Source: Cyanophora paradoxa CCMP329
Lineage: Eukaryota > Plantae > Glaucophyta
DNA: 64,000 nt
Assembly (NCBI GenBank): GCA_004431415.1
Contig: QPMI01000064.1
Span: 124,001-188,000, forward strand
Direction: 5' to 3'
A program made the position numbers and the translations under genes. The first letter of the stretch is position 1. Every line of letters begins with the position of its first letter. Shown piece after piece: positions 14,188 to 51,250 of this stretch. The notes beneath the pieces are model-generated. The model had not been told where the DNA came from and ran no database searches. It saw only the letters and a program-made list of their open reading frames with translations.

Positions 14188-16160
14188 TACGTAGTCTGTG
14201 CTGCCGCCGATGTGCTCGACTATGCCGTACGTTAGCCCTGCCAATTTCGGGCGAAGCCTCTTCGGGCGAAGCCTCTTCGGGCGAAGCCTCTTCCATAGGT
14301 CGATGGTGAACGCCCGATTCTATTTTTTTTCCACTCGAGTCCGATTGGTCCGAGCGTCCAGATTCGCGACCTCCGCAATGAAGGCGAACGGTCTCCGACG
14401 TCAGTCAAACGTTACAGGTACTCGACTGATTTATTTTTGGGCTCGAGGCTCCCCTAAGACGACCGCTCTCCCGTGCGCGTCGTCCGAAAATCGAATTTCT
14501 CTCATGGATCAATTCCGGTATTTATACCCCGGGGCTCGATCGCGAAACCCCAAAAAGTGGGACCCGGTCCCGCGACGAAAGCGCGCCAGGGACGCCCCAG
14601 AGCGGTCAGAATGACAGCCAAGAGCGCGCGCACCGCGGCAAGCTCGATTTCGGCCGCCCTCGACGCTCCAGTCCAGAGAGTCGGCCGCAAATTTGATCCT
14701 GCCGGTCCCTCCCGGTCCCCCGACGCGCGCATTCGATGCGTACTGGCGCGCATAGACATAGCAGGGCCTGCGCACTCCAGATATCCGCTTTTCGGAGCCG
14801 GAACAGCGCAGGAAGGTGCCCGGCGGCGAAAAATCGATCCTGCACAGCCCCGGGCAACTTTCCGCGCGCCCTGGCCGCGGCGCATGCTCGGAACGATAGT
14901 ATAAGCATTTGAGATGTAGAAGAAGCCTTTCGCACGGTCTCTAAATGCGCCGGGCTGCGAGGATCCAGCCGACCCCGAAAATTCGATCCTGGACGGACCT
15001 GCACATCTTTCCGTGCGCCCTCGCGTCCTCACCCATGCCCATCGCTACAGTATTCATTTGAGAGCTTCTTAAAGTCTTTCGCAAGCTCTGTGGCAGCGAA
15101 AGAGCACGAGAACCCAGCCGACGCCAAAATTTCGATCCTGGACAGGCCTGCACATATTTCCGCGCGCCCTCGCCTCTGCAGCCCTGGACATCGATCCTGT
15201 ATGCATTCGACACTCTGTTTAAGCGATTTATAAGCTCTGCGCATGCGCCTGGCCGCGAGAACCTCGCCCGTCCCCTCGACAATCTCCTCTCAATTTCCTC
15301 AGGGCCTCGAGCTCAACTACAGCTAGCTGATTGGCAGCACAACTCCTCCCCTCATTATATATATTCTCTCTCAGCCACAGCAATGTTAATTCTTCCGGCC
15401 AGTCCCACGACTCGCGCAATCGATGCGTACTGGCGCGCACAGACATAGCAGGGCCTGCGCACCCCAGAAATCCGCTTTTCGGAGTCGGAAGAGCGCAGGA
15501 AGGTGCCCAGATCCGGAGGCGAAAATTCGATCCTGCACAACCCCAGCTGCAGGCAACTTTCCGCGCGCCCACGCCGCGGCGCATGCGCCGAACAATAGTA
15601 TAACCATTTGAGATGTAGAAGAAGCCTTCCGCACCCTTTGTAGATGCGCTCGACCGCGAGGACTCAGCAGATCCAGAAATTTGATCCGGACCATGCCCCC
15701 CCCCCCCCCCTTAAACCGAAAAAAAAGCCGAAAAATGGAGAGCCGCAAGCGCGCACAACGAACGATGGCCGCAAGCACGAACGACGAACAAGCACAGCAA
15801 GCCGCACAGCTGCTTCGACGAAGACCTAGTGCAAGCTGCCGCGCCCGTCCGGGAAGTCACTCGAGCCTCGCAGCCTCCCGTCCTCGGTCTTTCCGTGAGC
15901 ACGTCCACATGTTTGACACAGCTACTCATCGTCCAGCTGATGTGCCCCTCGCAGGTCCCCGGCCGGTCCCGTTAACGTTTATGTTAACGTAAGCAGGCCG
16001 CAGCGCGGCCGCGGTCGCAAGCACAGTGCGCAGCTGACTCGCAGCTGTCGTCGATCTTTCTGTGAGCTCGCCCGTGCCTTTGGTTCGCCTGCGCACCACT
16101 GAGCTGATCATCGGATGTGCGCTTCGCAGGCCGATCTTCCCATCTCTGCAGAAGCCGCTC

Positions 16161-17300
16161 CGCTCGTCAGTCGAAGCGGCCGGAACCTGCATCGAATCTC
16201 GTCAGTCGAACCGGCCGGAACCTGCATCGAATCTTCGTGCCCGTGAGCCTCCCGGCCCGCCCGCCACCTCCCTCCCGCCGCCCGCCGATGTCCCCATCTG
16301 TGCGCAGGCCGCCGGCTCCTCACTCGAAGCGGCCGGCGCCTCCATCGAGTCGTTTTCCCCGTGAGCCTCCCGGCCCGCCCCCGCCATCTGCGCCCTCGCC
16401 TGACTGCCGCCCTCTAAGCCTCCCGTCGTCCCTAGCCGCGCTCGTCAGTCGAAGCGGCCGGCACCTCCATCGAGTCGTTTTCCCCGTGAGCCTCCCGGCC
16501 CGCCCCCGCCACCTGCGCTCTCGGCTCACTGCACCTGCGCCCTCGGCTGACTGGCGCCTTCCAGGCCTCCCGTCGTCCCTAGCCTCGTCAGCTCGCCCGC
16601 CCGCCCTGCCCCCCCGCCCCCCGCTGATCTCCCCGCCTGTGCGCAGGCCGCCGCGCTCGTCAGTCGAAGCGGCTGGCGCCTCCATCGAGTCGTTTTCCCC
16701 GTGAGCCTCCCGGCCCACCCCCGCCACCTGCGCCCTCGGCTCACTGCATCTGCGCCCTCGGCTGACAGGCGCCCTCCAGGCCTACCGTCGTCCCTAGCCT
16801 CGTCAGCTCGCCCGCCCGCCCTGCCCTCCCGCCCCCCGCTGATCTCCCCGTCTGTGCGCAGGGCGCCGCGCTCGTCAGTCGAAGCGGCCGGCGCCTCCAT
16901 CGAGTCGTTTTCCCCGTGAGCCTCCCTGCCCGCCCCCTGCGCCCTCGCCTGACTGGCGCCCTCCAAGCCTCCCTTCGTCCCTAGCCGCGCTCGTCAGTCG
17001 AAGCGGCAGGTGCCTCCATCGAGTCGTTTTCCCCGTGAGCCTCCCGGCCCGCCCCCGCCCCCCGCGCCCTCCGCTGACTGGCGCCCTCCAAGCCTCCCGT
17101 CGTCCCTAGCCTCGTCAGCTCGCCCGCCCGCCCTGCCCTCCCGGCCCCCTCTGATTGCTGATCTCCCCGTCTGTGCGCAGGCCGCCGCGCTCGTCAGTCG
17201 AAGCGGCCGGCGCCTCCATCGAGTTGTTTTCCCCGTGAGCCTCCCGGCCCGCCACCGCCCCCCGCGCCCTCCGCTGACTGGCGCCCTCCAGGCCTCCCGT
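16161..17300 (+). repeat. Composite minisatellite inside the Helitron, upstream of the RepHel gene
   Basis: The ~60-bp core cgctcgtcagtcgaagcggccggcgcctccatcgagtcgttttccccgtgagcctccc recurs 7-8 times at ~120- or ~200-215-bp spacing. The intervening modules are related to each other. Confidence 0.85.
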
Positions 17301-18095
17301 CGTCGTTACCGTGTGCCTCTCCATCCCCCACCACAGTCCGCACCCTCAGCCGACAGAAGCTGTCCAGACAGGCCGTTCCCACCATGTCTAGTTCAGAATC
17401 GTCTTCAACAGAGCCACCAAAGCGAAAGAAAGCAGGCAAGTAATTTGCACGCCCGAAATTGCATAGAATTACAGTTGATCCTTTAACCAGGTTTCCATCC
17501 AAACACTGGGAAGCACCAAAGCCATTCTCAGGCACAATTTCAAGCTCCGACTCCAGTGCGCACTGTTTATCATGCATGGAGTTCAATGATGTCCCTAATT
17601 TTGCGCATGTTGCTTGCAGCCGGGTGCAGCACCTGGTAAAGACTATGATACACAATTTCCTCCTTCAGCCGCTGCACTGCGAGTGCGCGCCAGCCGTGCT
17701 CGAGCACGCGGTGAATCACCTCAACCACCAGCACACGTCACACCGCCCAGTACAGGTAAATCAACCCCGTAAAAAGCATGATTCGTGAAATTTATTTCAG
17801 TATCTACAGAATCACAAACGACAAGCCATGCCCAGCGGCAACAACAGTACGCAAAACGAGCACACGGTACTTCACCGATTCCATGAGCTCGAATATTAAT
17901 GCAGTCTATGAACCTCACAAACCGACAGAGCGAGCACACGCAACAACTGGAACATCACCTGGAACCATCGGCTCCACACTGACACAGTTGTGGAAGTGGG
18001 ACCGCTCCGTGGAGAAGCTGTGCAGCAAGATTGCTACGTGCTCCATCACAGCCGCCGTCCCCCAGCACCCAGCGACATCGAAGGAGTCCAGATCG

Positions 18096-21000
18096 ATGGT
18101 GCACATTCCTCAACCGGTGCTCCGGTCGTCAACAGAGATGGGAACGGACGTGGACGCGGCAACTCTGGCATTCATCAGAACGTACTATGAGATCCTCCAG
18201 ACGCAGCCACGGCAAATGTTCCGCTTCTACAACCCTGAGAGCATCCACCTTTGGATCACAGACGAGACGACCCCGATGCCGCAGGCTGCCATCGGGATCA
18301 CGGTGCAAATTTCCATGCATCCAACGGAGACAGTGAAATTGACCCGTTCGCAGAGCATCGAGCAGCGCATCGCCGACCTCATGCTGCATAGGGTCGTTGT
18401 CGACATTGCGGCCATCACGGCCCACAACGTCGCCAACACTTACATCCTCGCCACGATCTCTGGCACCATGTCCCCAACGCCCGATGCCCCTCTGCGCGGA
18501 TTTGTTCAGACCCTTACACTGGCGCCCATCCACGGCGGCATGTACATCGCATCCGATGTCCTCATGTTCCTTCCCATCGACTTGACGTGGCCAGACGTGT
18601 CAGGTGTGTACTCGAAAATTCCAGGATCACGGTTTCTTTGATTGGAATTGAATTAATGATTGTGCTCACAGACCTGTCTACATTGTTTCCGGCAGCGCAC
18701 CCCACATCGGCTGCAAACCAACACATCCTCTCCAGTATCCTGCACGGCAATCCAGAAGGCAAGGCAATTGGCCGGTCAGTCGAACAGCTCTACTTGACCA
18801 GTGGCACACAACATGTGTCCATCACTCATGTTGCCAGCATGCCATCCCCCCAAGGCGGCGCTTCCATCACTGCAATCGGTCTGCAGAAGCACATAAATGG
18901 AGCCTGCGTGCCTTTCGCTGTGAACTGGCATCTGCATTTCAACGTCTTCACTGGCCACTTCTTCATCGATGACATCCAGCTCCACTTCTGGCCCATGCTT
19001 CATGGCTATTCACGAACAGACCTTTACCGATGGCCGTCACTTGCAAGCCTTCCACCGCCAGTCAAACCAGCTTCGCACGCCCAGGCTCCACACGCTGCCA
19101 TTGTCAATGCCCAGCACGTGCAAGAGAGGTGGCCGGCAATAGGTGACACCATCACCATTGGCTCGAAATCAGCAAACAGCACTCCACAGTCGAGTGCATG
19201 GTGTACCATCACAGTTGACAATGTCCGCAACCACCCTGTGACGGAGGATATGCATGACGAGTCACGCTTTGTCCCTGCAACCATTCGTGGCACTCCTGCC
19301 GGTCGTCCCCAGCACAAACTGCCCGACGACCACCGCTGGTTTGGAACAGTCCCAGTCTCCGTCGCCACGACCGCATGCAACTGTGACGATCACATGGCCC
19401 TGCGTAGAGAGCATCATCCAGCATCCAGAAAAAAACTCAAGGAGAAGCAAGCGTCGGTGACGGAGTTCCAAACTCGGGACACACGGCAAGCCGACCGGCG
19501 CCAAGTCCTACGCCAACATGCATCTCCCGAGAAGAAGGATGCCGAGGTTGACCGTGTTCGCAACCTCCGTCATCACAATCCAGATATGGCCTGGAAACGG
19601 CGCGAGGAGAAACGGCAGGCGCGCCTGGAGCGCAAGCTGCAGGACATTGAGAAGCATGCACTCGAGTGGGGCTTCCGCTACGACCACCCGAAGGAGCTCC
19701 TGCGCGACGTGGAGATCGAGATGGCTCGCGCGGCCCCCGAGAAGAAGCCCTTGTTCGAGGCTCTCCGCGACAGCGTTCTTCAGTACATACACAGTGCGCT
19801 GATTGTGTCACACGAATTCAATGCGCATTGACTCATGCATGCGCGCGGCAGCTATGTACCAGCCCATCTTCACGTGCGACTGCTGCTCGATCCGCGACTA
19901 CGTCGATGAGCTGTACACCGTCGACGCAGAGGATTCGTACACGCTTGCGGTGCATGGCATCACGCAGGAACACATCGATCGGATCGCCAAGGACCCTGAG
20001 GACGTCGGCCGCCATCCACGCCTCTGCTCTGCCTGCCACCATTTCCGTGCGAACCCCGAGCAGGGCAAGCCCATCTGTCCCCTTTCGCGCCAGGTGCCCA
20101 TTGTCAGACAAGCACATCCTGCCATCCGAGCTGATTGGCTTCTCTTTCCGCAGAACGGCGTCCACCCCACTCCTCCGTCGCAGAAGCTCGCCGACCTCGC
20201 CCGGGAGCTCACGCTACCGGAGTCCCTCGCCGTCCGCACCGTCGTGCCGTTCGTCCCGCTCTGCAGCTCGCCCGGCAGCGCCCAGGAGGCGGCGCGGGCC
20301 ACTGTCGTCCTCCTCCGTTCCCACCCCCAGCATGTGCTCAACGCTGTCGAGCCCATGCCGCCGAAGAACGTCATGATGTACGTCAACATGCAGAAGCCGA
20401 CGGCGCCGACGGCGGACCCGGAGTTCACGGGCTACTGGAAGTTCGACGTTGACAGAGTGCGCGCGACGATGGACGAGCTCGTCGCAGCTGGCAACAAGTG
20501 GTACATCAAGGCCGGCCTTGACAAGCTCGACGAGGCCTGGTGGTCGAAGTACAAGGCGAACGTCGAGACGTGGAACAGCAGCGTCGACAAGGAGGAGCCC
20601 CGCGAGCCCGCTCCCCACAAGCCCGTCCGCCACCGCAAGAAGCGCGAGCCCAGCGAAGCGCTTGAGTGCGTCGACGTCAGCAAGATCGGCACGGCCCTCG
20701 AGAACATGCAGACAACCGACGATATCGTGGACGACGACTCGGACGCTGGAGAGCCCGATATCGATGAGGACGACTTCGACCTGACGGTTCGCACCGGCGA
20801 CGTGCCGGAGAGCATGGCGGATGTGTTGCGCAACGTGGCAGCTCTGGAACTCGCGCGAGCAAGTGACGGGACCGCCCCGCTGCCATTCGACACACCGGGC
20901 AGCGTAACTGAGCCTGCCGAAGCGCCCGTCAGCGCCGAGTCCGACGAGCCAGCCGAGAAGACGACGCGCACCATCCCCAACCTCGACGAGCGTGCTCGAA

Positions 21001-24000
21001 CCAACAATCAGGAGTTGGCGGGCATCTTTGGCATCGCGCAGGAGTGGGCGGCGTCCACGCAGATCGATGCGAAGCTCGACCTCGGCCCCGACATCGAGAT
21101 CCTGCGGGAGACGCCAGCAGCGCCGGCGCCTGTCGTGCTGCCCGGTCGTTTTCGGGCTACACGTGTTGATGCGCTGACAGCACTTGGAATGGAGGCCGAA
21201 CTGCGCACCGTGCCCACCTGGGAGCGCGAGTACCCTGACTTCAAAACGGCCGAGCGCCAGACGGCTCCGTTCCCGCTGTGCTTCGTAGACGGTGCGCCCG
21301 ACCGAGCGAATCGCCTCCCTTGAACATCCAGTACCAGCGAGCTCACATACCTCCCTGATGCAGGCCGTCACGGGCGCGACGGTGATCCCGACGATCCTCT
21401 GGACCAGCGACTGACGCCGTTGTCCATCTCGACGTACGACCGCTTCTTCCTGCTTGCCGAGAGCACGAAGGCGCTCGCTGCAGACCCGGGCTTCTTCTTC
21501 ACGCAGCTCAGCGACTACATGCACCTGAAGGCGTACCAGGTCCGCCCGCAGGCCCTGGGCATCGCCTGCCCGTCACCCACACCACCGCGCAGGCTAGTCA
21601 GACCGCCATCCAGAGCAGGGCACTGCAGACCCTCCACGAGCAGGGCCACGAAGTCACGGCCTCGCATGTCATCGACCAGCTGGAACGTGCTGTCGACGAT
21701 CCCGAATTGACGTTGAACTTCGTGACGCGCAACTTGACGCGCACGACGCTGCGAGCGGTCCGCCGCCCCCACGCCACCGATTGTGCGAGCGCCTTCTGAC
21801 GTTCCGATCATACAGATCCCAGGCTCTCACGAGGATCTGCGCCGCGGGCATGGCCAGCTCATTGCAGGCGCACAGACGCTCGGGCCGCCGCAAGGCTGGC
21901 TCACGATCAGCTTCAACGACCATGGCGACCCCAGCCTCTACCGTGCCATCGACAGGCACCGGTTTCCCGACCAGGCCTCCGTCGACGCGCTCTCCAGCGA
22001 CGAGAAGGACGAGCTGCTCAACATGAATGCCGGCATTGCGACGCGCCATTACATTCGGCGATGCAACGCCATCCTCGCGTTCCTCACCTCCGAAGGAGCA
22101 CGAGCAGCCTTTGGCGGCTACAAGGTGACCGACTGGGTCCTCCGGCACGCAGAGCAGAAGCGCCGCACGCTCCACACGCACTTCGTCCTCTGGTTCAAGG
22201 GCATGCCGACGTACGACACGTGCCCGCCGGGCAAGATGGCCGAGTTCCTCGCGCTGTTCGACGAGTGCATCCATGCGGAGATCCCGCGCCCGCCGGCGGA
22301 CGAGCACGACCCGGGCTCCGTCCATCTCAACTTCCCGCCCGAGCTGCGCCAGCCGTGGGCGACAATGTTCCTCCGGAAGCTCATCCGCCGTCACAACATC
22401 CACAAGCACTCGGCGACGTGCCGCACCTACAAGCCCGGCCGCCCCCAGCGCTACTCCGCTGAGACGCGGAAACGGCACGAGGAGCTCAGCAAGGCCATCG
22501 AGGAGATCTTCAACAGGGGCGAGGCGATCGTGAACCCGGTCCTGGAGGGCTGCGGGCCCGTCGTCCGCGAGTCGCTCGCGAAGCAGAAGGAGCTGCATGT
22601 CCTTCTCAACAAGCTCAACGCCTGGTGGTGGATGGCGCGGCGCTGGTGCCGGTTTGCGCTTCCGGGCATCGCATCCGGAACCGCGCGCCTCATGTGCGTG
22701 ACGCCCACGGCACTGATCATGACACGTCCGTGGTTCTGATGCCCGTCGCAGGAATTCGTCGGAGCTCAAGCACGCCCAGCGCGGGGACCGGCTCCTCGTC
22801 CCGAAGCGCTGAACGGTCATGGACCTCTTTGTCAACACGTTCAACGGCTGGGTGGAGCGGATCGCGCTCGCAAACACGGACGCCTCGCTGCTCGCGGATG
22901 CCGCCGCCAGCATGGCGTACATGTTCGCCTACCAGATGAAGGTGACGACCCGAACACAGACTGACGCAGTGCCATGCATCACGCCGGACAAGCGCACCGT
23001 CCGGACGCTGCCTCGGTCCATCCTGCAGGCCATGCTGAAGCGGAACCCGGAGTACACGGACATCTTCGTGAAGAACGACATCGAACACTACATGGCCCGT
23101 CCCGCCGGCAGGTTCTGGGACAACATGTCGCTCTTCCTGTTCCTCCAGTGGTTCACGCCCGTGCCCCGGCGGACGGACCGGCCCCCCGACACCATCCGCG
23201 ACGTCAACCTCGCGTCCACTCTGCCTCAGTCACCAACAGCCACACTGATGGAGGGTGTCGAACCGACGGCAGGCCCGAGCGGCACCGACACGAGCAGCAG
23301 TGACGTCGACGACGACGACGACGACGACGATGGCCCGCCCGACGACGACGACCTTGCAGACCTGCGGACCGACGCGCGCGAGTGGGACATCTCCCCCTGC
23401 TGGGCGACGTGGCTGACGGGAACGGAACGCACCCCTGATACCCTGGAGGAGCTCCGAACAACGCCTCCGCTCATCCTCGATCCGCATAGCCGAGCACTCC
23501 CACGCTTCCAGTGCACGTCGACCAAGAAGCAGCTTCGAATGCGCCGTGAGCCAACACCGGTCGTGATGCCCTTCGACGCAAACGCTGGACAGGGTGGCAA
23601 GTACGCCATCCTCCTGTTCCACTATCCGTTCCGCAACGAGCTCAGCGATCTGCTCGACATGCACAAGCTTGGCGAGGTCACCGACGACGATATCGACGCC
23701 TCCATCGCGAAAAGGCGGGAGACGATCGCGCGGTACACAACCACGGGCAACCAGCACATGCGACAGCGAGCGCAGGCCCTGCTCGAACGGATCTCTCGCC
23801 AGGCGGCGCGAGGCGGACCGGGCGCCATCATCGGCGAGGCGCTGGAGCCCGGCGTCCTTCCACAATCGGAGTCGCTCCTCGGAGCCGGCCCACCTGCACC
23901 CGGCTTCGAGGCGCCGTCCGAGCAGCAGCGAATCAACGCGCTCAGAGCACGCACAAAAGGCATGCAGTCCTCCGGACGCGAGCCAGACACAACAGCGCCC

Positions 24001-26440
24001 TCGACAGTCGTGCCCGTCCTCGGCTCTGACGATCTCAGCGCCCCCCAGCGCGAAATCTACGACAAGGTCATGGACTGCTGCGACCTGCGACAGCAGCACG
24101 AAGACTTGAAGCTCAAGACCCGTGACTACGCCCAGGATGCGGAGGCCGGGTTCCCCGTCCCGCCGATCCTGCAGCAGTGGTACATGCCGTCCGGGCCGCG
24201 ATTCTACATCACCGGAGAGGCGGGCGCCGGCAAGACCGTGCTCGCCAGGGCAATCGAGAGCGGTGTCAACAGCCGCTACATGCGTCGCGCGAAGGGCGGC
24301 GAGGAAGCGGTGCCCCACGGACGCGTCAAGATCGTCGCACCATTCGGCTCCGCAGCCTTCAACGCCGGCGGCAGCACGGTCCACAGCAGCTTCAACGTGT
24401 ACTACAAGATTCCGAACGACAAGACGGCCTACGAGTCCTCCACCGCCCGCACCAAGTACCTCGACGACCTCCGGCGCCAGCTCGATGGCGTCTGGGTCGT
24501 GATCATGGACGAGGCGATGTCGGCATCGAGGCAGCTCTTCTACTGGTTCAAGAGCCTGCTGGAGGACGTCGCCTGCGGGCGCGAGGACCTGACAGGCGGT
24601 CTGGCGGAGGCCGGCGCCCACCCGCCGAACATGACCGAGTTCCAGACGAGCGTGGACGGCAGGCCGGTGCAGCAACGCTACCCCTTCGGCGGATTCTGCG
24701 TCCTCCTCTTCGGCGACGTGGCACAAGTGTCGCCGGTGGGATCGGACTCGCTCTGGCAGACGTACATCGCGAACAACCAGACCGCGGTGACGGATACGAA
24801 GTGGGACGGCCCGTACCACGCGTTCCACAGCTTCTTCACCTCCCACGTCCTCCCCACGTCATTCCGGCACGTCGGCGATCCGGAGCTTGCGAACATCCTC
24901 AACTGGATGCGCAACGCCGATACGAGCCACATGCGAGACGTCTACAACTACCTCCTACGCCGATCCCTGGACGACAGCGGCCTCCTGCACGACGACGGCG
25001 AGACGGCAGCGAACAACCGTTTGAAGCTGCAGCAGGACCGAGCGTGGGATGGCGCGATGCGCATGATGCTGACGAACAGGCGAGCGGAGCAGTACAACAT
25101 GGATCGGATCGGCAAGCTGCACGACGAGCGTGGCGTTCCAGTGCTGAAGATCGTCGCCATGGACACCCAGCCGGACGAGAGCCACAACAAGAACTGCGAG
25201 CACTTCGACACCAAGGGCGAGTTCGTCCCGTGCACAGAGGAGGCCGGCGGCATGCCCCACATCCTCACCGTCGCGCGCGGAGCCAAGGTCATGCTCCGCC
25301 AGAACCGCAACGTCGAGGATGGCCTCGCGAACGGCACGATCGGGTTCATTGCAGACTTCGACTGGCCCCCCGGCGACCCGACGGTGGACCACCTTCGCGA
25401 GCACGGGTCGGAGTACACGGCAACCGAGCCTCTTCAGCTCGAACACGCAATCGCAGATGCCGTGACGGAGCTGCCCAAAGTCGAGAGCGACGCCGAGCAG
25501 GCCGCCACAGCAGCGGCAACCTCGGCGCCGGCTGCGGCCTCGAGCTCGGCACCAGCAAAGGGCAAACGCAAGTACAAGAAGTCGCAGATGGTGAAGATGA
25601 TCGAAGGAGCTGAGCGGGCGGGCGCGCTGGCGACGGAAGCCACCAGCAAACCCACCACTGGCCGCCGTCTCGTCCCCCCGACCGCCTACTGGGTCTACTT
25701 CCCCGACGAACGCGTGGGCAGGCGAGCAACGGACGTTAAGCAGGTCACGATGCCCGACGGCAGGATCGTGCACGTGATCAAGATCGAGCCGATGCTCCGC
25801 AAAGCAGGTGAAACCACCCCCATGCATGCCGCGCGCATTCCAGTGATGCAGACGCTGAAATATTTCCCCAGATCTCGACGAGAACAGCTTCAAGAAGCAG
25901 ACATCGGTGCACGCGAACAACGAGCGAAAGGGCCCCCCCTTCAGGCTTGCGTTCGCCTCAACGGTCTACAAGGCACAGGGGCACACGCTGCCCCGCGCGA
26001 TCGGCGACCTGAAGGGCATGATCGCCAGCTACAACCACCGGCGCCAGCTCTACGTGATGCTCAGCCGCGTCAAGAACGGCGACCACATCCTCCTCGCCCA
26101 CCTCGCATCGCTCAAGCCGGGCAAGCTCTGGGACATCCTCGTCAAGATAGATTGGGACATGCAGGCCGAGCTCGTCCGCGAGAAGAAGGAGACCGACTAC
26201 TACGCAGAGCTCCGCACCACCGACCCCACCGCGCACACGCGCACCTGGGGCCACAAGTTCGAGGCGCTGCGCTGGGTCCGCGATGCAGCAAGCGGCCGCA
26301 TCAGGCTGGAGCGCGCCCCAGCAGCGCAGCAGATGGTCGAGCCTGGAACCTGGGACGACGTGCGGCGCTTCCAGACCATGTTCAAGCAAGCAGAGCAGGA
26401 CTACGCCCGGACCCCCTACCCCCGCCGCAGCGCTGAGTGA
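18096..26440 (+). CDS. Helitron RepHel transposase (NTF2-like x2, DUF6570-like Cys region, HUH Rep, PIF1-family helicase); spliced; one in-frame TGA at 22810
   Basis: GT-AG introns at 18303-18353, 18604-18671, 19794-19851, 20094-20153, 21292-21363, 21540-21592, 21758-21815, 22694-22751 and 25808-25871 join the ORFs in frame. Rep motifs: GPPQGWLTIS, HUH EQKRRTLHTHFVLW (HTH 22173-22181), CRFALP, YMFAYQMK (22918). Helicase motifs: GEAGAGKT (24214-24237), IMDEAM, FGGFCVLLFGDVAQVSPV, GAKVMLRQN...GLANG, AFASTVYKAQGHTL, YVMLSRV. The true start may be further upstream (candidate MSSSESSSTEPPKRKKA at 17384), but I could not join that exon in frame. Confidence 0.9.
18150..18995 (+). other. Tandem NTF2-like (G3BP-type) domains at the N-terminus of the RepHel gene
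   Basis: Domain 1: AFIRTYYEILQTQPRQMFRFYNPES...AIGITSIEQRIADL...ILATISGTM...RGFVQTLTLAPIHGGMYIASDVLMF follows the G3BP/NTF2 pattern. Domain 2 is more degenerate: SITHVASMPSPQGGASITAIG...PFAVNWHL...GHFFIDDIQLHF. Confidence 0.75.
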
Positions 26441-26934
26441 CCCGGTGTGCACCCTCCCCCTCCGTCGCGCGTGAAGCCTGCTGACGGTCTTCTCAGCGCG
26501 TTCCTATCCCTGACGTCCCCCACGTTCACATGTACAGTTGATATCAGCACTTAATTGTACCTCCTGCCCTCTACCCGTCCTCTCACCTAGACGTCCAATG
26601 CATCACATTTCCAGCTATCTCATTCTGCCAATATTTAATACTGCTCTAGGTAGTATTTATAATGTATTCTCCAGGTCGTAAATATAAAAACCCTTCGTAC
26701 TGGAACTGCCCTGCAGGAAATTTTAAACTGCTAGCTGCTATTATATTATATAGCTAGCTGCCCTGCAGGAAAACTGCTCCCCTAATTATATTTCCTCTCA
26801 GCGGCCCTCCCCTCCCCTCTCCCTGCCCTGACACCCCACCGACAACCGCGACGGGCCGCGATGATCAAGGGGGGCGCGAGGTGGGCGGCAGAGGCTTCGC
26901 CCGATGTTTGGGACCCGCAGGGGCCCAGGGCTTG

Positions 26935-48926: not shown

Positions 48927-50806
48927 TTAGAGCGGGCTAGGATGTGACTCCCAAGGGCGTACCTTGACGCAATCGTAGAGCTCTTGGGCGCGGAGCGCCG
49001 CCTTCCAGCCCGCGTACTCCGGTGGGCAGTCTGCGTTCCGAGCGGCGTTGAGTAGATTGTGAAGGCGAATCGGCCCGTCGCAGGCGGCGCAGACTTCCTT
49101 ACAGGTCCGGGGGCCGCGGGCCCGCTCTCGGGCGCGGGCGCCCGTGCGGGGCGGGCGCGGTCGCTTCTTTGAGGCCTGGGAGACGCGGCAGTCGCGTTCC
49201 CACTCCGCGTTGATTTCGCAGCGACGTGACCAGAGGCGTCGGGCCCGTTCCAGAAGCGTTTGCCGAACGCGTTTAGCTGCGCGTGCCGCGTACCGGGGTG
49301 CAAGGTTCAGGCAGCGTGTGAGGGCGCTTTCTAGACTCTGCGGAGCAAGGCCCTGGAGCACCCAGAGGCGCGGATACGCGTACGGCCTACCATCGTAGCT
49401 GCGCGCCTCGGTGTCGTCGTCCGCGACGCGGAGGAAGATTGGGACCAGGTCGGGAGCAAGGAGGGCTCCTGCTGGCGGCGCTGTGAGGCCGTGGGCCTCT
49501 CTGTATGCGCAGAGCAGAAGTCGGTTCAGTTCGCGAGCAGTCTCCGCGCGGTGCGCGACCGCATGCGGACCCGGGCACAGGAAGACGTGCGGGAAAGTTT
49601 CAGTCGGGCCTGCGGTGAGAGCCGTCGGTGCCCGGATCGGGCGGCTGGCGCCCGCTGCTGGTTGAGCATGCGAGGCCTCTGTTGCAGTCTGGCTGTTCTG
49701 TGAGGCTGTCGGGCCGCTAGTCTCTGCACGAGGGAGCGGCGTTCTGGTGGCGCAGCCCGCACAGCGTCCCCCAGGGTTGCAGGCGGCGTAGAGTTCCTTC
49801 TGGTCACGTACCCGGACTTCGTTCGCTGGTAGCGAGCTACAGAGCAGCTGCGTCCGAAACTTGAATAGCGCGTTGCGGGCTCCATTGGCGCCTTGGAATC
49901 GGGAACCTACGCTCGTTTCCGCATATAGCCCTGCTATGTCTGCGCCGTCGGCGCCTCGGCGCAGGAGCGCGCCAGCCAGCGGTTGTTGGGTCCAGGCAAA
50001 GTGCGTCTGGTGTTCGTGAAGTGCGTCCATGTGTGCCTTGGGGTCCCCTTCCACCCGTCGTGTGCGCCCGTCGGGGTCGCTGATGGTGAGCACCGCAGGC
50101 ATGCTGAAGGCCGGCGGCAGAAAGAGAGGCTCATGCCGGTGTTCGTCCGCCAGCTCCAGGTCGGCCGCCACGTTCGCTCCGGCGTCCGCGACGTCGTTGT
50201 GGGGGTCGCGGGCGTCGCCCTTTGCGTGCGCTTTGACTTTGACGAGTTTGAGCGGCCGCCCGCGCTCCTCTAGCATTGTCCTGAGCTTGCTCCATGCGTA
50301 CAGTTCCGCGGAGCAGGCGTGCCGGATGTATTCCCGCGGGCTGCGGCAGCTCGCGTGCTGGACGAAATCGGAGTACCAGCGGATCGCGTTCATGTTGTCG
50401 ACGTGTAGAACCGCTCCGAAAGGCGAGAGCAGGTCAGCCATAAGCGCCGCCTGGAGTTCCGCCTTGTTGATCTCCTGCAGGCCCCGGAGCCGGGCAAAGA
50501 AGTCCGTGAGGATACCCGGCGGGTGCAGGCTTGCGCCAGTTCTGAGGTCCGTTTCCGGCCAGTGTACTGCGTAGCCCGCGCGAGCGTTAACCGTCTGGCC
50601 CTCTTTCAGGCTCCCGTCCGTCCAGGCGTACGCTGGGGCGTCGGCCACGTATGAGCCGCCAGGCGCCGCCTCGGCCTCCAGGTGCTCTTTGCGGTAGCGG
50701 GCTTCGAGGCGCTGGCCCGGCCCGGTGCTCGCGGCTCTCGGCCCGGCGGCCCAGCTGCTGGCTCTCCGGATCCGAGCCCTCGACTCGGCGATGATCCGCG
50801 GCCAAT
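48927..50806 (-). mobile_element. 5'-truncated LINE ORF2 fragment: RNase H plus CCHC zinc-binding region
   Basis: Intron-free ORF with RNase H motifs AWTDGS, INKAELQA, LHVDN, KVKAH and HNDVADAGA. These are followed by CAGC...ETFPHVFLCP and LWSRRC, typical of the C-terminus of non-LTR ORF2. No RT domain is present. The probable 3' UTR runs toward ~47900; no tail or TSD found. Confidence 0.8.
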
Positions 50807-51250
50807 GCATGCGCATATGCTCCGCGCGCGGCTTTCGAATTCTCTCTCTCGATCTCTTTCTCGTCTGACTCCGCCGCTCCTCTCCGGCCCAAACCTCCTC
50901 GAGCTCGTCACCTGCGCCCCACGAAACACAGGCGCATGCATATATATGCTGCAATACAACGGCGTTCCGAAAAATTCTCTCTCTCTCTTTTTCTGCTCTC
51001 TAGCTCTCCGTATGTACGTAGAAAATCATTTCTCTACGCCGATATCGACCGATATCGAACTGCAGCTGTGGCGGCATGTGGCGCGCGCTCGGCCATTTTC
51101 GAAGTTCCGCCTTCGAATTCATGACTGATCGATATCGCGAGTCGGGTGTGTGTCGATCTTTAGCTGTATATACGTATACGTATATACGTATACATATGCA
51201 TATGCATGTGCTCGCTGGTGTGACGCGTGCTCTCCTCCTCGCATGCGCAG

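Follow-up and report, generated by a model that had tools for sequence, protein, structure and literature searches.

Can a rolling-circle transposon of the Helitron type carry a domain of the NTF2 family as part of its own transposase? The question is raised by a stretch of 64,000 nucleotides (nt) of GC-rich, eukaryotic DNA from the glaucophyte alga Cyanophora paradoxa CCMP329 (assembly GCA_004431415.1, contig QPMI01000064.1, positions 124,001 to 188,000, plus strand), which we call the window and whose own positions supply all coordinates given below. A chain of long plus-strand open reading frames (ORFs) runs through about 18.1-26.4 kb of the window, and encodes an NTF2-like domain some 3.2 kb upstream of, and on the same strand as, the Rep region of a Helitron transposase of the RepHel type. 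The first-pass annotation of this DNA, made from the letters alone, had proposed that two NTF2/G3BP-like domains are spliced in frame onto that transposase. Here we describe evidence that the first of these domains is real and lies within the Helitron, and we rate the chance that it is spliced onto the RepHel transposase as a single gene as a little better than even; because the splice at 18604-18671 that would create the fusion is itself predicted, so is the fusion.

The arrangement that we favor is an autonomous-type Helitron of about 11 kb, which would sit within an array of its own non-autonomous relatives and carry one long gene with many short introns, predicted to specify a transposase of about 2,500 codons and ~290 kDa. 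The first coding exon or exons of this gene would specify a divergent NTF2-like domain of the G3BP/Bre5 type, and splicing of a 68-nt phase-1 intron (18604-18671) would connect it with an orphan region. Behind the latter would come, in this order, a helical segment that is charged and has clusters of basic residues, a region rich in Cys, the HUH-type Rep endonuclease and a PIF1-type helicase. The coordinates of these parts are collected in Table 1.

The ORF at 17778-18641 (plus strand) matches the Pfam profile NTF2 (PF02136) over about 18165-18566, with an E value of 5e-10 and 40.3 bits against a cut-off of 21. When PDB sequences were searched with phmmer, Rasputin, G3BP1, G3BP2 and Bre5 were retrieved at E values of 1e-4 to 1.5e-3, and in an alignment with relatives of the G3BP type the invariant and near-invariant core residues are kept. 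An AlphaFold2 model of the domain reached a predicted local distance difference test (pLDDT) of 80.6 and a predicted template modelling score (pTM) of 0.76. The top PDB matches of this model in Foldseek were G3BP1/2, Bre5 and NTF2, with an E value of 5e-9 to G3BP1, the ranking within the fold being biased towards G3BP-type proteins, from whose matches the AlphaFold2 input alignment was built. Judged by profile match and predicted structure, the first domain is a genuine NTF2-like domain of the G3BP/Bre5 type, and the profile search and the structure prediction thus came out as the first-pass annotation had anticipated.

Set beside G3BP1/2, Rasputin and Bre5, the Helitron domain has the same alpha+beta cone fold (template modelling score, target-normalised, 0.74-0.88). 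Both the FxxxYY motif and the FVQTxxLAP motif of G3BP-type domains are present in it, but it is only 20-34% identical to them and contains a 17-residue insert unless a 51-nt intron, discussed below, is removed. Aligned by HMMER, its residues opposite F15, F33 and F124 of G3BP1 are Phe, Phe and Met, the three G3BP1 positions being those that we take to be the aromatics of the peptide-binding groove (compare the title of PDB entry 7s17). A predicted complex of the NTF2 homodimer scored 0.16, against a mark of 0.32, which speaks neither for nor against dimerisation. The domain also differs from G3BP in its surroundings: G3BP proteins have an NTF2-like domain, an acidic/PxxP region and an RRM, whereas the Helitron domain precedes the orphan region and the transposase, and a Pfam scan of 18587-21323 found neither an RRM nor any other Pfam domain.

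Close relatives of the domain are scarce. A HMMER search against 1.84 billion protein representatives gave only 17 matches below 1e-3; the best match other than the domain itself had an E value of 4.5e-6 and about 31% identity, and identities overall ranged from 24 to 37%. Ten relatives were scanned for domains, and all contain NTF2, five of them together with an RRM. Those that could be named come from a green alga (a G3BP-like protein) and a fungus. A protein homologue search with the NTF2 ORF recovered only the ORF itself, and scans of viral and metagenome contigs with the domain returned zero relatives. Such divergence from known sequences speaks for an old domain and against one that was copied recently from a host gene. 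The first-pass annotation had regarded it as a captured host module. The part of that proposal that holds is a G3BP/Bre5-type module within the Helitron, on the RepHel strand and with the RepHel codon bias; recent capture from a host G3BP gene is unsupported, the best non-self relative being no closer than stated above. The same fusion in other species, which that annotation had proposed to look for, was not encountered: among the 1.84 billion representatives, none was found to combine NTF2 with Helitron domains, and no NTF2-RepHel fusion was found in the viral or metagenome contigs.

Whether the domain belongs to the transposon at all is a question about the borders of the element. The element is embedded in an array of units of about 1.3-1.45 kb, which have the form of a non-autonomous Helitron. 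Of the 16 copies of the 9-mer AGCTAGCTG that the window contains, 15 are at array-unit tails (at 15321, 30585, 32002, 33295 and others), each of which consists of AGCTAGCTG plus 5 nt and is followed by a head starting CAG. The remaining copy, at 26752, marks the point at which unique RepHel sequence gives way to the array, with 5 nt between it and the next head, and is preceded by a hairpin. At its 3' end the element has the features of a Helitron terminus, a hairpin and a family-specific terminal motif, and its 5' end is bracketed. On the left border, the tail of one array unit (15306-15334) gives way to a head at 15335; the ~300 nt at 15393-15691, on the 5' side of the element, are 81-85% like internal sequence of the array units, and 15692-26755 is unique within the window. 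The RepHel element shares with the array units the tail of AGCTAGCTG plus 5 nt and the same following head, but it differs from them in having ~11 kb of unique coding sequence and a 3' region whose likeness to theirs is confined to the last ~15 nt. The self-nesting array family may have its autonomous partner in this element.

Since both candidate 5' ends (15335 to about 15692) precede 18096, the NTF2 domain is internal to the element whichever placement holds. A host gene that adjoins the Helitron without being part of it would be an alternative origin of the ORF, and the window offers neither an empty site nor a second full copy that would fix the 5' end. Array units of one and the same Helitron family, however, flank 15692-26755 on both sides, and the strand and codon bias of the NTF2 ORF match those of RepHel. 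Moreover, diverged contigs of ~90% identity cover 17700-18924 at a depth like that of RepHel, which indicates that the NTF2 region is multi-copy. We consider an adjoining host gene highly improbable.

GC-rich tandem repeats with periods of 215 and 119 nt and 89-95% matches occupy 16435-17111 of the element, separating its 5' part from the NTF2 ORF. The ORFs of this stretch are proline-rich and without a Pfam match.

The transposase that the first-pass annotation had placed downstream is indeed there, with Helitron_like_N and PIF1 matches on the same strand. By its sequence it is a RepHel protein, having an HUH Rep with a two-tyrosine motif and, C-terminal to Rep, a PIF1-type helicase of superfamily 1; we take HTHFVLW and YMFAYQMK to be the Helitron Rep motifs. 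The helicase has its Walker A motif at 24214-24237 and its Walker B motif at 24499-24516, and its matches to PIF1 in the PDB are weak. Helicase motif V (STVYKAQG, 25958-25981) sits in frame 2, so that an intron at 25808-25871 is needed, and 25874-26437 matches UvrD_C_2 with an E value of 5e-5. A homologue search with the helicase ORF scored 8,000 candidates and found none that reached E 1e-10; this set was perhaps filled by low-complexity words and is hence not informative on relatives. The pieces of 21292-21822, at the start of the Rep region, gave no Pfam match.

Codon usage links the NTF2 exons to this transposase. In a codon-usage model trained on RepHel exons, under which noncoding controls have log-likelihood ratios (LLRs) of -0.05 to -0.53, both NTF2 parts score positive in the coding frame and negative in the other two, and their codon bias matches that of the transposase. 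The two putative introns beside them look non-coding. The upstream portion of the ORF, 17778-18095, has an LLR of +0.05 and no coding signal; for this reason the most probable start of translation is 18096 or 18138.

Six candidate introns in the gene all have the form GTG..CAG, measure 51-72 nt and have a GC content below that of their flanks. They fit a host with many short introns: the C. paradoxa genome, of 67.6% GC, has a mean of 9.2 introns per gene, with a mean length of 86 bp (PMC6704402). Those at 18604-18671 and 19794-19851 are GT..AG introns of phase 1 and connect frames 0, 2 and 0 in turn; the first-pass annotation had used them to link the ORFs into one frame, and its arithmetic is correct. 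For the second of the two there is a gene model of a paralogous copy, EukProt EP00741 Cyanophora paradoxa tig00021438_g21456.t1 (hereafter P0018), which reads ..LQYIH-T-MYQPIFTCDCC.., the exact product of splicing 19794-19851. P0018 also omits a 60-nt, in-frame, stop-free segment equivalent to 20094-20153 (GTGCCC..CCGCAG), and this omission is a precedent for the 51-nt in-frame intron proposed within the NTF2 domain at 18303-18353. The segment at 20094-20153 is another short in-frame intron of the kind that ORF scanning misses.

Removal of the 17 codons at 18303-18353 shortens the spacing from Ser to Ile from 38 to 21 residues; in 11 of 16 G3BP-type relatives this spacing is 19-23, and the restoration of NTF2 spacing asserted by the first-pass annotation is thereby confirmed. 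Removal also puts a Gly at the position of the family's conserved Gly before the helix, as read by eye. In a paralog contig that is ~90% identical to the window, 9 of the 14 differences fall within 18303-18353, with the GT and AG intact, and the changes in the flanking exon are 4 synonymous and 1 conservative. Spacing, composition and the cluster of paralog substitutions thus support the 51-nt intron, which we list as putative.

The same paralogs bear on whether the NTF2 segment is doing anything. It might be a passively captured fragment, functionless and decaying, with a frame that is open through youth or chance, and Helitrons often capture host gene fragments, according to the main text of the HELIANO survey (PMC11417382). 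A second paralog contig, from one run, matches the window without a difference over ~700 nt, after which 20 of the 123 positions at 18396-18518 are changed, giving 12 non-synonymous and 3 synonymous codons, mostly conservative and free of stops; this near-neutral pattern is what a passenger would show, and the failure to find a homologous fusion in proteins, viral contigs or metagenome contigs points the same way. Yet ~30% identity to any known NTF2 protein implies that the capture is old, and over that time the domain has retained its invariant core, a fold that is predicted with confidence and a codon bias like that of RepHel. Neither paralog fragment has a stop, and the flanking exon of the other fragment has mainly synonymous changes, as given above. 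A functionless passenger is, in our estimation, distinctly unlikely. Gene conversion between copies could have produced the pattern at 18396-18518 as a mosaic, or the contig could be chimeric.

The fusion itself hinges on the predicted joint at 18604-18671, for which resemblance to the intron class, AT-richness and continuity of the ORF provide the basis. Read without this splice, the NTF2 ORF ends at the stop at 18639-18641; from the acceptor at 18671 the frame is open for 374 codons, and the other frames there are open for at most 106. If the 68 nt are not an intron, the NTF2-like ORF would be a separate small accessory gene of the Helitron (167-181 aa, ending at TGA 18639), comparable to the RPA genes of other Helitrons, and RepHel would start at ATG 18656 or 19394. 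The published Cyanophora annotation agrees with such a gene, since it models a single exon whose exact unspliced product of 181 aa (18096-18641) is a EukProt protein, and P0018 starts at the Met equivalent to 19394, without NTF2. The other ORFs had no exact counterpart in the protein collection. The codon signal falls after 18603, and stand-alone NTF2 proteins of similar size are found among the matches (P0003, 181 aa; P0008, 192 aa). The annotation cuts RepHel as well, however: P0018 ends at 247 aa, far short of Rep, so that this gene is fragmented in the annotation in any case, and the authors write that their BRAKER/Augustus models "require additional manual curation" (PMC6704402). The 68-nt segment resembles the other introns of the gene, and the 240 open codons at 18672-19393 would need a start of their own, for which the sole upstream ATG, at 18656, lies 15 nt past the NTF2 stop. 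We regard a separate gene as rather unlikely, although less so than a passenger.

The spliced single gene remains the reading that we prefer, and the annotated 181-aa protein, the start of P0018 and the fall in codon signal are to be counted against it, as are the near-neutral paralog segment and the failure to find NTF2 and Helitron domains in one protein. Further observations weigh on the same side. In the four sequencing runs that cover this copy (one sample), contigs cross all three introns unspliced, are DNA-like and are silent on expression, and RNA-labelled runs contain next to none of the words of this copy. Within the orphan region at 18672-19393 the codon signal is weak and patchy, being strong only at 18914-18990, and no recognisable family, fold or profile match was obtained from Pfam, the PDB, a structure atlas or hhalign. 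Further downstream, at a break in Rep (22737-22812), the only GT-AG solution (22698-22857) deletes the segment FVNTFNGW, which lies in frame 1 and is presumably the conserved Rep stretch before the tyrosine motif.

The orphan region may nevertheless fold, and it has a hydrophobic, beta-like stretch at 18914-18990. The first-pass annotation had placed a second, degenerate NTF2-like repeat here, at 18674-19099, and this half of its claim to two domains did not survive, the first domain having been upheld by Pfam, the PDB and the model. The proposed repeat has no Pfam or PDB match and no match in the structure atlas; BLASTP against the first domain gave an E value of 2.0, hhalign against the family alignment gave a probability of 3%, and a single-sequence model had a pLDDT of 35. 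Among proteins, P0018 alone is closely related to the stretch that separates NTF2 from Rep, and the Cys-rich region at 19852-21291 has no Pfam or PDB match.

The Rep break also concerns the state of this copy. No AG occurs between 22807 and 22855, short-read contigs match the assembly at 22737-22812, and every other junction in Rep-Hel has a canonical short-intron solution. Judging from the sequence, this copy, which is otherwise well kept, may be damaged and inactive through the break, or the splice there may be non-canonical.

An NTF2 domain would be a new kind of cargo for a Helitron transposase. The main text of the HELIANO survey, which covers 404 genomes, reports 20 extra domains that are stably included in Helitrons, comprising RPA, OTU, AP endonuclease and 17 further (PMC11417382). 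The NTF2 domain resembles these in being upstream of RepHel on the same strand, as are OTU and RPA in HLE2, and differs from the named ones in being missing from that main text (PMC11417382). Full-text searches for literature linking Helitrons with NTF2 returned unrelated papers only, and none that links them with 'nuclear transport factor 2'. Within the survey's main text and these searches, the first-pass annotation's assertion that NTF2 is not among the known accessory domains therefore agrees with what we found: an NTF2 accessory domain for Helitrons was not found reported, Helitron gene capture itself being well known.

The NTF2-like domains of G3BP, Bre5 and NTF2 bind short Phe-containing motifs and dimerise, and the partners docked in this way are nucleoporin FG repeats, the FGDF motif of USP10 and of viral proteins, and Ubp3. 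Viruses target the NTF2-like domain of G3BP via FGDF motifs, and in yeast and animals the domain recruits a deubiquitinase. By analogy, the Helitron domain might serve as a docking module for host proteins with Phe motifs (nucleoporins, USP10/Ubp3), and it may dimerise. Such docking would help a very large transposase to enter the nucleus or to escape ubiquitin-dependent turnover. G3BP is a stress-granule protein, and the first-pass annotation had suggested interference with stress-granule defence as a possible role besides nuclear import and dimerisation. The basic clusters of the charged region could be import signals, in which case import would not be the sole candidate role of the NTF2 domain. 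The fuller proposal, that the transposase of a Helitron family acquired its N-terminus by recruitment of a G3BP/Bre5-type docking domain, as a new accessory class kept under selection and binding nucleoporins or a deubiquitinase of the USP10/Ubp3 type, is one that we advance tentatively, as possible but more doubtful than the splicing into one gene.

Were it true, recruitment of a deubiquitinase would be the in-trans equivalent of the captured OTU, UCH or Ulp1 proteases, domains that occur in other Helitrons according to the main text of the survey (PMC11417382). The recurrent Helitron domains mostly bind or modify DNA or proteins, and NTF2 would add a peptide-docking module. A fusion that is real and conserved would open a testable way into the question of how a rolling-circle transposase of ~290 kDa gets into the nucleus or evades host control, and this in an early-branching alga whose transposon biology is sparsely recorded. 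Should the ORF be just a passenger or a separate small gene, the locus would represent ordinary Helitron gene capture.

Table 1. Features of the putative Helitron and its predicted gene, in window positions (GC3, GC content at third codon positions)
Feature	Position	Strand	Basis
Putative whole autonomous Helitron, ~11.4 kb	15335..26765	+	3' end well placed; 5' end bracketed by 15335 and about 15692
First coding part of NTF2-like domain	18096..18302	+	ATG 18096, second ATG 18138; Pfam; GC3 0.75; codon LLR +0.58
Putative 51-nt in-frame intron (GTGCAA..CGCAG), stop-free	18303..18353	+	Partly in low-confidence loop of model; LLR -0.16; GC 0.49 vs 0.60 in flanks
Second coding part of NTF2-like domain, with beta sheet and FVQTLTLAP motif	18354..18603	+	Pfam; GC3 0.78; LLR +0.72; core residues conserved
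Putative 68-nt phase-1 intron (GTGTGT..CACAG)	18604..18671	+	GC 0.38 vs 0.56 in flanks; resembles other introns of the gene
Orphan coding-like region	18672..19393	+	Open for ~240 codons; other frames at most 106
Charged helical region, basic clusters 19427-19447 and 19595-19636	19394..19793	+	85% identical to P0018 residues 1-132; LLR up to +1.7
58-nt phase-1 intron (GTGCGC..GGCAG)	19794..19851	+	Used exactly by paralog gene model P0018
Cys-rich N-terminal region of RepHel	19852..21291	+	CxxC at 19875-19886 and 20025-20036; GC3 0.78-0.85; P0018 continues into region
Start of Rep region, frames 0, 2, 0, two or three short introns	21292..21822	+	Frame map and GT-AG enumeration; 21292-21363 most likely intron
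Rep endonuclease core, HUH motif HTHFVLW 22173-22193	21813..22736	+	Pfam Helitron_like_N E 1.4e-9 (ORF 21783-22739)
Break between Rep frame 0 and frame 1	22737..22812	+	TGA 22737; frame 1 open from 22813; lesion or non-canonical splice
Rep two-tyrosine motif YMFAYQMK 22918-22941 and PIF1-type helicase	22813..25807	+	Pfam PIF1 E 7.8e-11 (ORF 22819-26436), Pif1_2B
64-nt phase-1 intron (GTGAAA..CCCAG)	25808..25871	+	Needed to keep helicase in frame
Helicase C-terminal exon and stop codon	25872..26440	+	GC3 0.90; motif V; UvrD_C_2
3' subterminal hairpin and terminal motif AGCTAGCTG + 5 nt	26722..26765	+	DNA fold -8.6 kcal/mol; array head from 26766

Elsewhere in the window, an ORF of 675 aa on the minus strand (48930-50954) matches RNase H weakly, with an E value of 0.001 and 19.7 bits where the cut-off is 25.8, and may be the remnant of a retroelement.

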